Assembly (NCBI GenBank): GCA_048013815.1
Contig: CM106586.1
Location: forward strand, 9,300,001 to 9,364,000
Direction: 5' to 3'
Length of the DNA: 64,000 nt
DNA from: Setoptus koraiensis
Lineage: Eukaryota > Animalia > Arthropoda
This document shows, piece after piece, positions 13,377-17,556 of this stretch (its first letter is position 1; each line of letters opens with the position of its first letter). The position numbers and the translations under genes were made by a program. Below the pieces are notes generated by a model that made no database searches, was not told where the DNA came from, and saw nothing but the letters and a program-made list of their open reading frames with translations.

Positions 13377-13579
13377 TTACTGTGCAACAGGGGCCATGCT
13401 ACCGCGACCAAAACCAGAGCTTGCGTAACCGCCACGACCGCCTCCGTAACCTCCTCGGCCGTAACCGCCCATACCACCAGATTCGCCGGCAGCCCTGTAA
13501 CCGCCAGACCTATATCCACCTCCGAAACCTCCGTCCCTCGGTGGTCTGTCTGATTGTGTACGGTCTGAATCGCCGAGTG
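13377..13579 (-). CDS. RpS10: 40S ribosomal protein S10 exon 2 (G/R/Y-rich tail)
   Basis: Acceptor ATGCAG|CA, phase 1; reads PLGDSDRTQSDRPPRDGGFGGGYRSGGY...GFGRGSMAPVAQ*. Confidence 0.85.
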
Positions 13580-13738
13580 CTGCATGTGTAGGAATTGTGA
13601 GGGTGAAAGATTAGTTGTGTGATGGTGAATCACAATTAATACGAAAATTTCAACAAAACAATCTGAGGAATGTGAGTCTATGAGCAGAGGTACTGCAGTG
13701 AGAGACTCTTCGGATCAATAGTCTACATGCATACTTAC

Positions 13739-14048
13739 GTTTGCCTGCCTTTTTTCTTGGGTCGTCTTTCTTGAGAGTTTCGGGTAGTGTCTGTGATGGT
13801 AAATGTAAATAATCCCTAAGATATTGGATGCCTTCGTTTGTGAGATACCAGTAGTAGTGTCTCCAGGCGAATTGTTCTTTTACGTATCCCCTCGATTTCA
13901 TTGATTGTAAGGCCTTGATGACATGGAGATTTGGTACATCGTGCACATGTGGATGTTTGGGAGCATTGAAATCCTTCTTGGCCACTATGACTCCTTTCTC
14001 TAGCAAATACGAGTAGATAGCTTTACGGTTCTTATTGGGCATCAACAT
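13739..14048 (-). CDS. RpS10: 40S ribosomal protein S10 exon 1
   Basis: [32 protein letters not shown]...[31 protein letters not shown], the eS10 signature; donor C|GTAAGT. Confidence 0.97.
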
Positions 14049-14343
14049 CTTGTCTAGATTTTATTCAATTGAATCGTGCCTGGAGTTTAAATTAAATGTT
14101 GTTAATGGTTATTATTCAAGAATAGTACCCCTCGGAATAGTGTTTATCCTAGATTGATCATTTAATATTGTGACAGGCTAATAATAGATAATTAATTAGT
14201 AGTTCTAAATGATGATGATGATAATATTAGTTATCCTGGCAAGTTTGGGCATCGAATAATATATAAGTTGACCACGCGATATGCAGTTAATGCAGTATGA
14301 TGAACATCAGTGAGCCTGCTGCTGCATGCGGTTCGCAACACAC

Positions 14344-14353
14344 AAAAAGGAAG
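14344..14353 (-). promoter_or_regulatory. TCT/TOP polypyrimidine initiator of RpS10
   Basis: Minus strand CTTCCTTTTT about 300 nt upstream of the RpS10 ATG, as expected for ribosomal-protein genes. Confidence 0.7.
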
Positions 14354-14366
14354 TGTTCGCGTTCGC

Positions 14367-14400
14367 TGTTTTTGCGGCGCCAGATTCGAACTGACGAAAG
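14367..14400. promoter_or_regulatory. 34-bp element in the RpS10/AP1G1 divergent promoter (copy 1)
   Basis: TGTTTTTGCGGCGCCAGATTCGAACTGACGAAAG, identical to 17256-17289. Confidence 0.8.
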
Positions 14401-14653
14401 GTCAGAAATTCTATTGAATAACGCGCTCCGATCATTTTGCTGAAATCAAAACATACGCCGACAACAATATTGGCGTAACACTCGCATATTGCAGTGACAA
14501 CAACACAGATGCAACTAGCTGGAGTTGTTTGGTATTATTAGATACTATTGTTGTATCACACTGATATCTTAGGTTATCATTATTATCCCTTCTATCTTAA
14601 ATTAATTATCAATCAATTTATCATCATTTGTACGATACTGGATCATACGCATC

Positions 14654-16846
14654 ATGGACAACATACAGCAAACTATATTGTCGAAATTTAGCATCCAAGC
14701 GCCCATCAGGCTACGGGACCTAATTAGACAGATCAGGGCAGCCAGGACGGCCGCCGATGAGAGGGCCGTCGTCCACAAGGAATGCGCCTACATTCGAACA
14801 ACATTCCGCCAAGAAGACAATTTATGGAGGTGCAGAAATGTTGCAAAGTTATTATATATTCATATGCTCGGTTACCCAGCTCATTTTGGTCAGCTAGAAT
14901 GCCTAAAACTGATTGCTTCGCCTCGGTACACGGATAAAAGAATTGGCTATCTAGGTGCAATGTTGTTACTGGATGAGCGACAGGATGTTCATTTGTTAAT
15001 TACTAATTCCCTCAAGAATGATCTCAACAATTCCGAACAATTCGTCGTAGGATTAGCTCTTTGCGCACTCGGAGCAATATGTTCGCCTGAAATGAGCAGA
15101 GACCTAGCTGGAGAAGTAGAACGCCTCATGAAATCATCCGCACCTTATATTAAAAAGAAAGCCATCTTGTGCGCCGCAAGAATGATCAGAAAAGAGCCTG
15201 AATTAATGGAGATGTTTATTCCAGCCACTCGGACATTGTTAAATGAGAGGAATCATGGCGTTCTTATTGCTAGCATTGTTCTTATAACTGAAATGAGCGA
15301 AAAAAGTCTAGATACTTTGAGTTACATGAAAAAATCCATCCCTACCCTCGTCAAACTAATGAAAAATCTTATAATGTCTGGCTACTCGCCTGATCATGAT
15401 GTCTGCGGTATTAGTGATCCATTCCTTCAAGTTAAAATACTTAGATTGCTCAGAATATTTGGTCATAACGACACCGAGGGAAGTGAAGCAATGACCGATG
15501 TTCTTGCTCAAGTGGCAACCAACACGGAAAGCAGCAAAAATGTAGGCAATGCAATTTTATATGAAACCGTCCTAACTATTATGGAAATCAAATCAGAAAG
15601 TGGCCTCAGGGTTTTAGCAATCAATATTCTTGGAAGATTTTTACTTAATATGGATAAAAACATACGTTATGTCGCATTGGAAACTTTGTTAAAAACTGCC
15701 CAAACAGAATACAATGCTGTTCAACGTCACAGAAGGACAATTAATGAATGTTTGAAGGATATGGATACATCCATTCAGAAAAAAGCGATGGAGTTGTGCT
15801 TTTTATTAATTAATTCTTATAACTACAAAACTATGACGAAAGATTTGATATGTTTTCTAAGTCGTGCCGATTCGGAGCTCAAGGAGATATGCGCATCGAA
15901 TCTCTGTATTTGTGCGGAGAAATTTGCCCCAAATACCAAAGTTAGGATCGACACCATGATCAAGGTATTAACTACTGCCGGCAATTATGTGAGGGATGAT
16001 GTCGTTGGGACCCTTTGTCAGCTCATATCGGATTCTTCCACGTTGCATGCATATTGTGTACAACACTTATGGCGACAATTGAAGGGCGATTTGGATACAA
16101 TGCAACCTTTAGTCCAAGTAGCTATGTGGTGCCTAGGAGAGTATGGTGATCTTATAAATGAAGATGTATCCTCTATTGAAAATTCATCTGCAAGCCAAAC
16201 TTGCACTCTTGGCTCTGATGACGTTAGCCCTGTGAGTGATACAGTTTTAACTGACAAATTCGCAGCGTTGGATGAAGAGCTGAAAGACGAAATACCAGAT
16301 ATGATCGGGATTGATGTTGTTCCCATTACTAAGATATCACAGAGAGAACATATAAATGAAGAGGATATTATTGAGAAATGTCGTTCTGTTTTAACCCATC
16401 CACTTGTCACCATATCAACTAGAGAATATACATTATGTGCCTTATTTAAGTTGAGCGTTCGTTATCCGAACCAATCGGCCGAAGTGAAACGACTCACCGA
16501 TGGCTTCACAACAAATCTAAGTATTGAATTACAACAGAGATCTATTGAGTTTTCATCCATATTTTCACGTCACGAAGATCTTATGCCGGCAGTATTTGAG
16601 CGCATGCCTCCAATGGAAAAACCGAATAACAATAACTCGGAAAAACAACAACAGATACCTGATGATAGTCCAGCTTTATTAGATGAAAATCTAACGGATT
16701 CGCAATCTATTCTAGCAGATAGTGGCGCCGGTGAAGAGTTGCTGGCGGCTTTCAGTAGCGTCACGCCATCGGCTACAATAGTAAACAACAATGGACCAGA
16801 TCAATTGCAAACCCTCAAGGATCTGGATGAACTGATCAAATGGTGA
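14654..16846 (+). CDS. AP1G1: AP-1 complex subunit gamma, intronless, trunk plus hinge only (730 aa)
   Basis: [17 protein letters not shown]...[47 protein letters not shown]...[13 protein letters not shown]; AATAAA at 16856-16861. Confidence 0.96.
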
Positions 16847-16865
16847 AATATTGAAAATAAACAAT

Positions 16866-17072
16866 CTATTTATCAAATCTGTCTAGTTTGTCTCTCTCCT
16901 CCGGTATGGCGCTCAAGATTGGCCGCTTTAGCTCGGCCAAATATGCCTCCGGGATGTTTCGATACTTCTCGATTGAAGTTATGCCGTTTGTGGCTAGCAT
17001 GTAGCCTCCCAAGGCGGTGATCCCTAACAAATAAGCGGCTCCAATGAGCGGGCCTTTAGACTTGATCGACAT
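16866..17072 (-). CDS. 68-aa single-pass membrane microprotein, family not recognised
   Basis: ATG in AAAAATG context; hydrophobic LIGAAYLLGITALGGYMLA then a charged tail; has an upstream promoter copy and a minus-strand AATAAA at 16675-16680. Confidence 0.6.
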   Translation of the reverse strand: MSIKSKGPLIGAAYLLGITALGGYMLATNGITSIEKYRNIPEAYLAELKRPILSAIPEERDKLDRFDK

Positions 17073-17074
17073 TT

Positions 17075-17289
17075 TTAATGGTGTTGGTGTTATTAAAAAA
17101 TAATATTACTCAAAAGAGCGTTTATCCTAGGTTGGTCGTCTAATATTGTGTCAGGATATTGGTCCTTGATTGGAAATTCTAAATGATGATAAACTGAAGA
17201 CTGTTGAACATTAAATGGTGGGGCGGTTGCTCGCAACACTCATTTAAGTGATCGTTGTTTTTGCGGCGCCAGATTCGAACTGACGAAAG
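17075..17289 (-). promoter_or_regulatory. Diverged duplicate of the RpS10 promoter and 5' leader (copy 2)
   Basis: Collinear blocks: 17117-17155 vs 14139-14177 (33/39), 17177-17190 vs 14203-14216 (14/14), 17223-17239 vs 14328-14341, 17256-17289 vs 14367-14400 (34/34). Confidence 0.85.
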
Positions 17290-17397
17290 ATGAGAGTTTC
17301 TTGTTTGTTGTTACGTTTTGTCACAATAGTCTCTACACACAGTTCGTAGAGTATATCTAGGTAGGTTTAGCGAATTCTGATTACGTAGGTTGATGTC

Positions 17398-17556
17398 ATC
17401 TTCTCAGAATAGATAGACCAGTGATAAAATTATTGTTAAATTAAAATTTTATCACTGGTCTATCTATTCTGAAAAGATACACAAGAAAAGAATTGAAAGA
17501 GCTTATCACAAGGATATCACAAAAATAAGTTCTTTCAATTCCTTTCTTGTGTATCT
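17398..17556. other. Two adjacent long inverted repeats (hairpins)
   Basis: Arms 17398-17431/17445-17478 (34 bp, 1 mismatch) and 17475-17506/17525-17556 (32 bp, 1 mismatch, 1 G-U). Confidence 0.9.

Follow-up and report, generated by a model that had tools for sequence, protein, structure and literature searches.

In a 64,000-nucleotide (nt) stretch of the genome of the tiny, plant-feeding phytoptid eriophyoid mite Setoptus koraiensis (contig CM106586.1, positions 9,300,001 to 9,364,000; hereafter the window), the 5′ region of the ribosomal protein (RP) gene RpS10 is present in two copies. Copy 1 (14040-14412) leads into RpS10 itself, and copy 2 (17064-17301) lies beyond the AP-1 gamma adaptin gene (AP-1γ), in front of an open reading frame (ORF) of 68 codons, termed ORF68, which would encode a single-pass membrane microprotein. 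The reading that we favor, with a probability of about 0.45, is that copy 2 works as a promoter and that ORF68, the frame it drives, is a genuine young gene, which would have arisen when a 5′ partial duplication recruited the adjacent sequence. We infer the transcription of copy 2, the position of its start site, the translation of ORF68, and the link to the target of rapamycin (TOR) pathway from the sequence.

Two copies of the RpS10 promoter region

The two copies are collinear paralogues in direct orientation. Repeat finding within the window recovered three blocks, namely, 14112-14180 versus 17090-17158 (69 nt, 77% identity), 14192-14216 versus 17166-17190 (25 nt, 84%), and 14363-14412 versus 17252-17301 (50 nt, 90%). 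A gapped local alignment of the two copies scored 119.5, compared with 20.5 ± 2.6 for shuffled sequences (n = 300, maximum of 29). The runs of identity listed in an earlier note on this DNA, 33/39 (14142-14180 versus 17120-17158), 14/14 (14203-14216 versus 17177-17190), and 34/34 (14367-14400 versus 17256-17289), were exact, and the deletion of ~80 bp that it described in copy 2 corresponds to an alignment gap of ~75 to 80 nt in the middle of the block. Copy 2 also lacks the 48 nt that adjoin the RpS10 ATG on its 5′ side, and it bears a few small indels relative to copy 1. Over the aligned noncoding part, the identity is ~72%, and the divergence of copy 2 amounts to ~25 to 30%.

Upstream of the respective ATG, the duplicated regions span 14049-14412 and 17073-17301, both read on the minus strand. 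Copy 1 is composed of the 48 nt at the ATG, a leader with a possible intron in the 5′ untranslated region (5′UTR), ACTTCCTTTTT at 14343-14353, and an upstream module at 14367-14400, whereas copy 2 abuts the ATG of ORF68. The end of the homology, which had been placed right at this ATG, is only approximately there: strong homology stops ~5 nt before it, and a faint in-register similarity continues past it.

The genome searched comprised 48.76 Mb in two contigs, the contig of the window being 24,533,333 bp long. In this genome, a DNA search located the 226-nt block in two places only, and a pattern search with a 26-mer from the block, allowing up to 3 mismatches, likewise returned two places only. 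RpS10, AP-1γ, and ORF68 are each single copy. The shared block is, thus, the 5′ region of RpS10 duplicated locally, in two copies, and not a dispersed repeat, the outcome that had been named beforehand as fatal to the promoter interpretation.

The part of the block that is perfectly conserved is a 34-mer on the minus strand, at 14367-14400 in copy 1 and 17256-17289 in copy 2 (identity count and genome pattern search), that contains both GTTCGAAT-N3-GCGCC and TTTCGTCA. At an identity of 72 to 78% over 230 columns, a perfect run of at least 34 has a probability of 0.0008 to 0.01, which indicates that conservation between the copies is truly uneven. The motif GTTCGAAT-N3-GCGCC has 17 genomic sites, compared with 1 for the reversed control. 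Two of these are in the window (14376-14391 and 17265-17280), and 15 are elsewhere. Read in the orientation of the motif, sites are followed at 97 to 900 nt by ORFs encoding enolase, an RRM protein, Cdc37, an IF3-like protein, and RpS3A, as well as LisH and PWWP proteins. ORF68 starts 208 nt downstream of the 34-mer motif, within this range.

From these positions, GTTCGAAT-N3-GCGCC is a candidate promoter element in S. koraiensis. Since it is found upstream of varied housekeeping ORFs, the perfect 34-mer appears to be a housekeeping promoter-proximal module that is not specific to RP genes. The proposal that the perfectly kept part is an upstream element agrees with the intact genome-wide motif inside it, and the uneven conservation fits selection on the promoter in both copies, as had been suggested. 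The description of copy 2 as a strong RP promoter was, however, overstated, given that the retained motif appears to be general to housekeeping genes, with enolase, Cdc37, and the RRM protein among its followers. The case for copy 2 as a putative working promoter is made chiefly by the base-perfect 34-mer that it retains.

Some further features of the motif were observed. Two of its sites are in the leaders of Ty3/gypsy elements (G000:C2:404239 and G000:C2:22476269), which encode gag, a zinc knuckle, and an aspartyl protease, are identical around the motif, and carry it ~200 nt upstream of gag. The 3′ half of the motif often resembles the E2F-type TTTGGCGCC. A B-box-like tRNA T-arm (GTCAG-TTCGAAT-CTGGC, with a 5-bp stem, a TTCGAAT loop, and a 7-nt acceptor-like tail) can be traced within the 34-mer, but a tRNA-derived element was rejected because ARAGORN was negative for tRNAs at each of the 17 motif sites. 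The extended form TTTCGTCA-N-TT(C)GAAT was discarded as a general RP motif, having only four genomic matches (one in each copy, one at RpS6, and one that is apparently due to chance).

Comparison with relatives shows copy 1 to be the native, ancestral RpS10 promoter, because ACTTCC and a related module sit upstream of RpS10 there as well. In four other eriophyoid lineages, ACTTCC(T) precedes the RpS10 ATG by 240 to 351 nt, and GC-rich GCGC-type motifs lie ahead of it in each case. In Fragariocoptes, the upstream region reads TTTCGTCA...GAAT..GCGCGC, followed by CTTCCGG. Beyond such short motifs, the RpS10 upstream regions of the different species gave no alignment, being too diverged. Within S. 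koraiensis, RpS3A carries CAGTTCGAAT-AGC-GCGCC 58 nt before an ACTTCCG at −305, and RpS6 carries TTTCGTCA-T-TTGAAT..GCGGCGCAA 57 nt before an ACTTCCG at −236.

The pyrimidine elements differ between the copies. The TCT initiator of RP genes reportedly follows the consensus YYC+1TTTYY, which is said to go back to Parry et al. in 2010. As a sequence match, TCCTTTTT of copy 1 fits YYCTTTYY and lies within CACTTCCTTTTTG (14343-14356, minus strand). At ~17240-17253, copy 2 has CACTTAAATGAG in place of CACTTCCTTTTTG and shows no C-initiated polypyrimidine initiator, and in the gapped alignment of the copies CACTTCCTTTTTGTGTG is changed into CACTTAAATGAGTG. A proximal TCT-like candidate, ATTCTTGA, near 14117-14125 and ~75 nt before the RpS10 ATG, reads ATTTTTTA in copy 2. 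Both candidate pyrimidine initiators are, therefore, destroyed in copy 2, which at sequence level bears out the reported loss of the terminal oligopyrimidine (TOP) motif.

The ACTTCC element is common to the RpS10 orthologues of the four lineages and to RpS3A and RpS6 of S. koraiensis. It lies ~300 nt from the ATG in RpS10, and likewise in RpS3A and RpS6. A start at this distance implies a putative intron in the 5′UTR, for which no confident splice sites emerged from the sequence. ACTTCC(G/T) could equally be an ETS-type site, given the ACTTCCG of RpS3A and RpS6. Whether initiator or ETS-type site, the RP-typical element is gone from copy 2. This copy may have been freed from TOP/mTOR control, as the earlier note proposed, a pathway that is putative in this mite.

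The orphan frame behind copy 2

ORF68 (16866-17072, minus strand, 68 codons plus stop) converges with AP-1γ, the two stop codons being 20 nt apart. The predicted protein has a basic N-terminus, a Gly/Ala-rich hydrophobic helix at residues 9 to 27 (Kyte-Doolittle value of 1.69), and a charged tail. Its codon usage log-likelihood of +0.04 per codon is the best of the six frames, the others ranging from −0.19 to −0.75. This score falls in the top 11% when set against the 149 nongenic small ORFs of the window, and genuine coding chunks of 68 codons place it at their 41st percentile. The GC content is 0.49, versus ~0.30 in the flanks, and the ATG has an A at −3.

No relative of ORF68 was found. A Pfam scan at E ≤ 1 returned no family, UQCC3 and the COX14 family included, and the word-index search and exact-protein look-up returned nothing. 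The ESM Atlas search gave no usable match. A phmmer search against 1.84 billion representatives gave two matches only, both of which were dismissed, one being a multi-VWA protein and the other a repeat protein on a contig with bacterial-looking neighbor genes. There was no paralogue in the genome of S. koraiensis and no confirmed locus in the metagenome search, and an exact 22-mer scan of metagenome contigs was empty. Neither ORF68, searched with tblastn, nor the block was present in nine loci of other eriophyoids, none of which is a close congener. The frame is, as had been proposed, an orphan in all of these searches, and it appears to be lineage restricted. The suggestion of a UQCC3-like or COX assembly factor is left with a resemblance of shape only.

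The similarity that continues past the ATG was compared with the RpS10 coding sequence. In an ungapped, in-register comparison, 73 of 201 positions without the ATG are identical, versus 53 ± 6 for codon shuffles (P = 0.0008). The matches are concentrated in the first 60 nt (28/60), with 7 of the first 8 nt (ATGTTGAT versus ATGTCGAT) and 12 of 13 nt at codons 14 to 17. The shared M1, K6, and Y14-L15-L16, put forward earlier as possible chance, are indeed present. In pairwise comparisons of the RpS10 of S. koraiensis with five orthologues, ORF68 matches the former at 17 to 23 of the positions where the two RpS10 sequences differ and the orthologue at 6 to 13. That ORF68 is truly homologous to the RpS10 coding sequence, over its first ~50 nt or more, falls somewhat short of even odds in our estimate. 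In-frame inheritance of the RpS10 start requires the 48-nt deletion just upstream of the ATG.

Origin of the duplication and competing readings

The gene order around both copies is rearranged relative to other eriophyoids. ABCA, followed by COX6B and RpS10 in a head-to-head arrangement, is found in four eriophyoid lineages, with an RpS10-COX6B spacer of 390 to 770 bp, and pinin and AP-1γ are head-to-head in three. In S. koraiensis, COX6B (G000:C2:15964563) is 6.6 Mb from RpS10 and has no ABCA alongside, and pinin (G000:C1:12568928) is on a different chromosome from AP-1γ. The S. koraiensis neighbors of RpS10 and AP-1γ were found together with these genes in none of the available eriophyoids. 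Both ancestral pairs, COX6B-RpS10 and pinin-AP-1γ, are broken in this lineage.

With both pairs broken and AP-1γ between the copies, the pattern is the one expected if the duplication came with the rearrangement, and it probably arose in this way. One possibility is that a block was inserted and the duplication arose at its flanks; another is that the RpS10 5′ end was duplicated in tandem together with AP-1γ and the second AP-1γ was then lost. According to the staggered-break model, duplications flank rearrangement breakpoints, as in Drosophila inversions. The earlier interpretation is supported in part: the promoter copy and the orphan ORF stand. It overlooked that this is a rearrangement site.

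The course of events that we propose is as follows. The 5′ end of RpS10, comprising the upstream module, the initiator region, the leader, and possibly the start and first codons, would have undergone a lineage-specific partial duplication in a phytoptid eriophyoid mite, as part of the rearrangement by which AP-1γ came to lie beside RpS10. The second copy now lies 2.9 kb away, beyond AP-1γ. It has diverged, with several deletions, retaining the 34-bp housekeeping module and losing the pyrimidine/ACTTCC element. It would still act as a promoter from which RNA polymerase II transcribes in the minus-strand direction, and, in the adjacent sequence thus transcribed, the first good ATG would open the 68-codon frame. 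The product may be a young gene or proto-gene that is expressed in a housekeeping-like manner, without a TCT/TOP-type start. The arrangement found, a paralogous copy of a promoter and leader beside a new ORF, is that of a 5′ partial duplication.

Several observations weigh against this proposal. The S. koraiensis genome paper generated no transcriptome sequencing (RNA-seq) data (PMC11920263). Nongenic ATG-initiated ORFs of 50 to 110 residues number 149 in the 64 kb of the window, and 11% of them match the score of ORF68, which has no orthologue for a purifying-selection comparison. A leader of ~180 nt, as obtained with a start homologous to that of copy 1, would contain two short upstream ORFs, and copy 2 has lost the sequence surrounding the presumed 3′ splice site. 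The perfect 34-mer could stem from a short gene conversion tract. As for descent from the RpS10 coding sequence, the in-register offset ranks first of 310 only narrowly (76 matches versus 72 for the runner-up, ATG included), the gapped alignment of ORF68 with this sequence was not significant (P = 0.16), and the coding identity is only 36%, versus ~72% in the flanking noncoding copy.

An identity of 36%, so far under that of the noncoding flank, also makes it unlikely that ORF68 is a neutrally decayed fragment of RpS10. If the homology is real, this indel-free pattern would fit a protein that evolved rapidly while its reading frame was kept open. The fullest version of the proposal, in which ORF68 is a translated and selected membrane microprotein that took its start and N-terminal codons in-frame from RpS10, while the promoter was converted from the TCT/ACTTCC type of RP genes to an ordinary housekeeping one, is in our view unlikely.

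The strongest competitor, to which we assign a substantial though lesser share than even odds would give, is that copy 2 is an inert scar, the decaying by-product of the rearrangement through staggered-break flanking duplication or tandem duplication and loss, and that ORF68 is a chance frame, neither transcribed nor translated. Copy 2 has lost the ACTTCC/pyrimidine element together with ~80 and 48 nt, including the region by the RpS10 ATG, and synteny is broken on both sides. The lack of any relative of ORF68 and the abundance of small ORFs that score equally point in the same direction. A scar would not, however, account readily for a perfect 34-mer amid 72 to 78% identity that coincides with the promoter motif. 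Moreover, the ORF68 frame is clearly the best of six with a raised GC content, and a frame of 68 codons that stays open in such diverged sequence needs some luck.

It is considerably less probable that copy 2 is active with a product other than ORF68, either a noncoding RNA antisense to the 3′ part of AP-1γ or a plus-strand RNA running through two hairpins at 17398-17556. In favor of the former, ORF68 and AP-1γ converge, and there is no minus-strand AATAAA for ~190 nt past the ORF68 stop, so that any transcript would run antisense into AP-1γ. In favor of the latter, RpS10 and COX6B ancestrally shared a head-to-head promoter, and the hairpins, which are unique in the genome and start 108 nt from the 34-mer, have a folding z score of −14.9. 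Transcription in both directions is, however, putative, the Rfam matches of the hairpins are far below gathering scores, and the codon usage of ORF68 is coding-like.

An old conserved microprotein, UQCC3-like or COX assembly-like and too short for detection, that acquired a copy of the RpS10 promoter appears still more improbable. Many mitochondrial inner-membrane microproteins have a short basic N-terminus, a Gly/Ala-rich helix, and a charged tail, as ORF68 does, and short proteins elude sequence searches, so that 68 residues leave room for a remote orthologue. Nonetheless, neither the Pfam scan, with UQCC3 and the COX14 family included, nor the two dismissed phmmer matches among 1.84 billion representatives gave any sign of one, and the word and ESM Atlas searches, the loci of the nine relatives, and the metagenomes contributed nothing.

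Finally, a mobile or dispersed element (miniature inverted-repeat transposable element, short interspersed nuclear element, or tRNA-derived) or shared motifs without common descent is effectively refuted as the origin of the block: the drawable T-arm and the 15 further sites of the motif, including two in Ty3/gypsy leaders, are set against two genomic copies only of the block and of the 26-mer, the absence of terminal repeats, the negative ARAGORN result, and three collinear blocks over ~230 nt, which exceed a shared motif.

Neighboring genes, known systems, and significance

The native RpS10 gene is on the minus strand at a single genomic locus. Exon 1 (13739-14048) encodes the S10_plectin domain (Pfam PF03501, E = 2e−44) and is 82 to 87% identical to eriophyoid RpS10, with 86% for Fragariocoptes setiger. 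It is followed by an intron of ~159 nt in the coding region (13580-13738), with a GTAAGT donor, and by exon 2 (approximately 13377-13579), which encodes a Gly/Arg-rich tail. The frame and the predicted acceptor of exon 2 were obtained by matching ...AGKPL... plus GGYRSGGYRAAG to the tails of Fragariocoptes and other eriophyoids. The RpS10 searches used exon 1 only, the exons having been joined solely to choose the acceptor. RpS10 in Fragariocoptes and the other sampled eriophyoids consists of uninterrupted ORFs of 154 to 166 residues, in which this intron is missing.

AP-1γ (14654-16846, plus strand), between the two copies, is intronless and earless (Adaptin_N, E = 3.5e−133; no PF02883). It is the sole gamma-type adaptin in the genome and is closest to those of eriophyoid mites, with 66% identity to that of Aceria tosichella. 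Among the 20 proteins compared, the gamma-ear (PF02883) is also missing from the nearest orthologues, of 689 to 762 residues, including that of A. tosichella, whereas other mites, ticks, and spiders retain it. The loss of the ear looks, therefore, like a trait of the eriophyoid lineage and not of this locus.

On the far side of copy 2, between it and the 3′ end of a cadherin gene (18278, minus strand), are the two adjacent near-perfect hairpins at 17398-17556, for which no strand is assigned and whose membership in the unit is only putative. They have stems of 34 and 32 bp and a fold of −88.5 kcal/mol, and are found nowhere else in the genome. The comparison with Rfam gave only microRNA-like matches, all below threshold. 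They could represent a young hairpin-RNA locus.

In Drosophila yakuba, 5′ gene fragments activate previously untranscribed neighboring sequence, and 28 of 43 inherit the parental start codon (PMC5460883); partial and chimeric gene duplicates have been reviewed (PMC3449122). The S. koraiensis locus resembles these cases in that a parental promoter and leader, possibly with the start codon, are set against foreign sequence and followed by a new lineage-specific frame. It differs from them in its RP-gene parent, in the age of the event (~25 to 30% divergence), and in the remodeling of the copy, which lost the initiator and underwent deletions. The D. yakuba cases were defined by RNA-seq, whereas the transcription of copy 2 is putative. 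The recruitment of adjacent sequence by a duplicated 5′ gene end is a known route, and it gives the best fit to this locus.

Copy 1 can also be compared with the TCT/TOP-type core promoters of RP genes (e.g., PMC5737516 and PMC6954239). Like these, it has a C-initiated pyrimidine run, TCCTTTTT, kept across eriophyoid RpS10, and a GC-rich upstream module; unlike these, its ACTTCC(G/T) fits an ETS-type site equally and its start site is putative, and copy 2 does not conform to the motif. As with head-to-head pairs of RP and mitochondrial genes, the duplicated region descends from a shared spacer, that between RpS10 and COX6B, but here AP-1γ flanks copy 1 and copy 2 has no adjacent plus-strand gene.

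Other parallels concern the rearrangement and the shape of the protein. As in breakpoint duplications, the two copies bracket a relocated block, AP-1γ and its flanks, with synteny broken on both sides. In contrast to those at Drosophila inversion breakpoints, the copies are direct and not inverted. ORF68 shares with UQCC3, COX14, and SMIM20 a length in the range of ~60 to 90 residues, an N-terminal Gly/Ala-rich transmembrane helix, and a charged tail, but has no detectable sequence relationship to them.

If copy 2 is silent, it would be a mere scar of the rearrangement. If in-frame descent from RpS10 is true, a fragment of an RP gene and its promoter would have been rewritten into an unrelated single-pass membrane protein, and the new gene would be uncoupled from the growth-linked control of RP mRNAs. 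The locus also offers a first sketch of the housekeeping and RP promoter architecture of eriophyoids, in which GTTCGAAT-N3-GCGCC would stand ~35 to 60 nt upstream of ACTTCC. It shows, moreover, that this lineage broke up the ABCA-COX6B-RpS10 and pinin-AP-1γ neighborhoods, which are conserved in other eriophyoids.

If copy 2 is active, the locus would constitute a clean natural experiment in an extremely compact animal genome, with paralogous promoters that have an identical upstream module and a different initiator, one driving an RP gene and the other a lineage-specific microprotein. Two questions would become testable, namely, what the pyrimidine/ACTTCC element does for transcription and for the control of translation beyond insects and vertebrates, and how new genes originate from duplicated 5′ gene ends.

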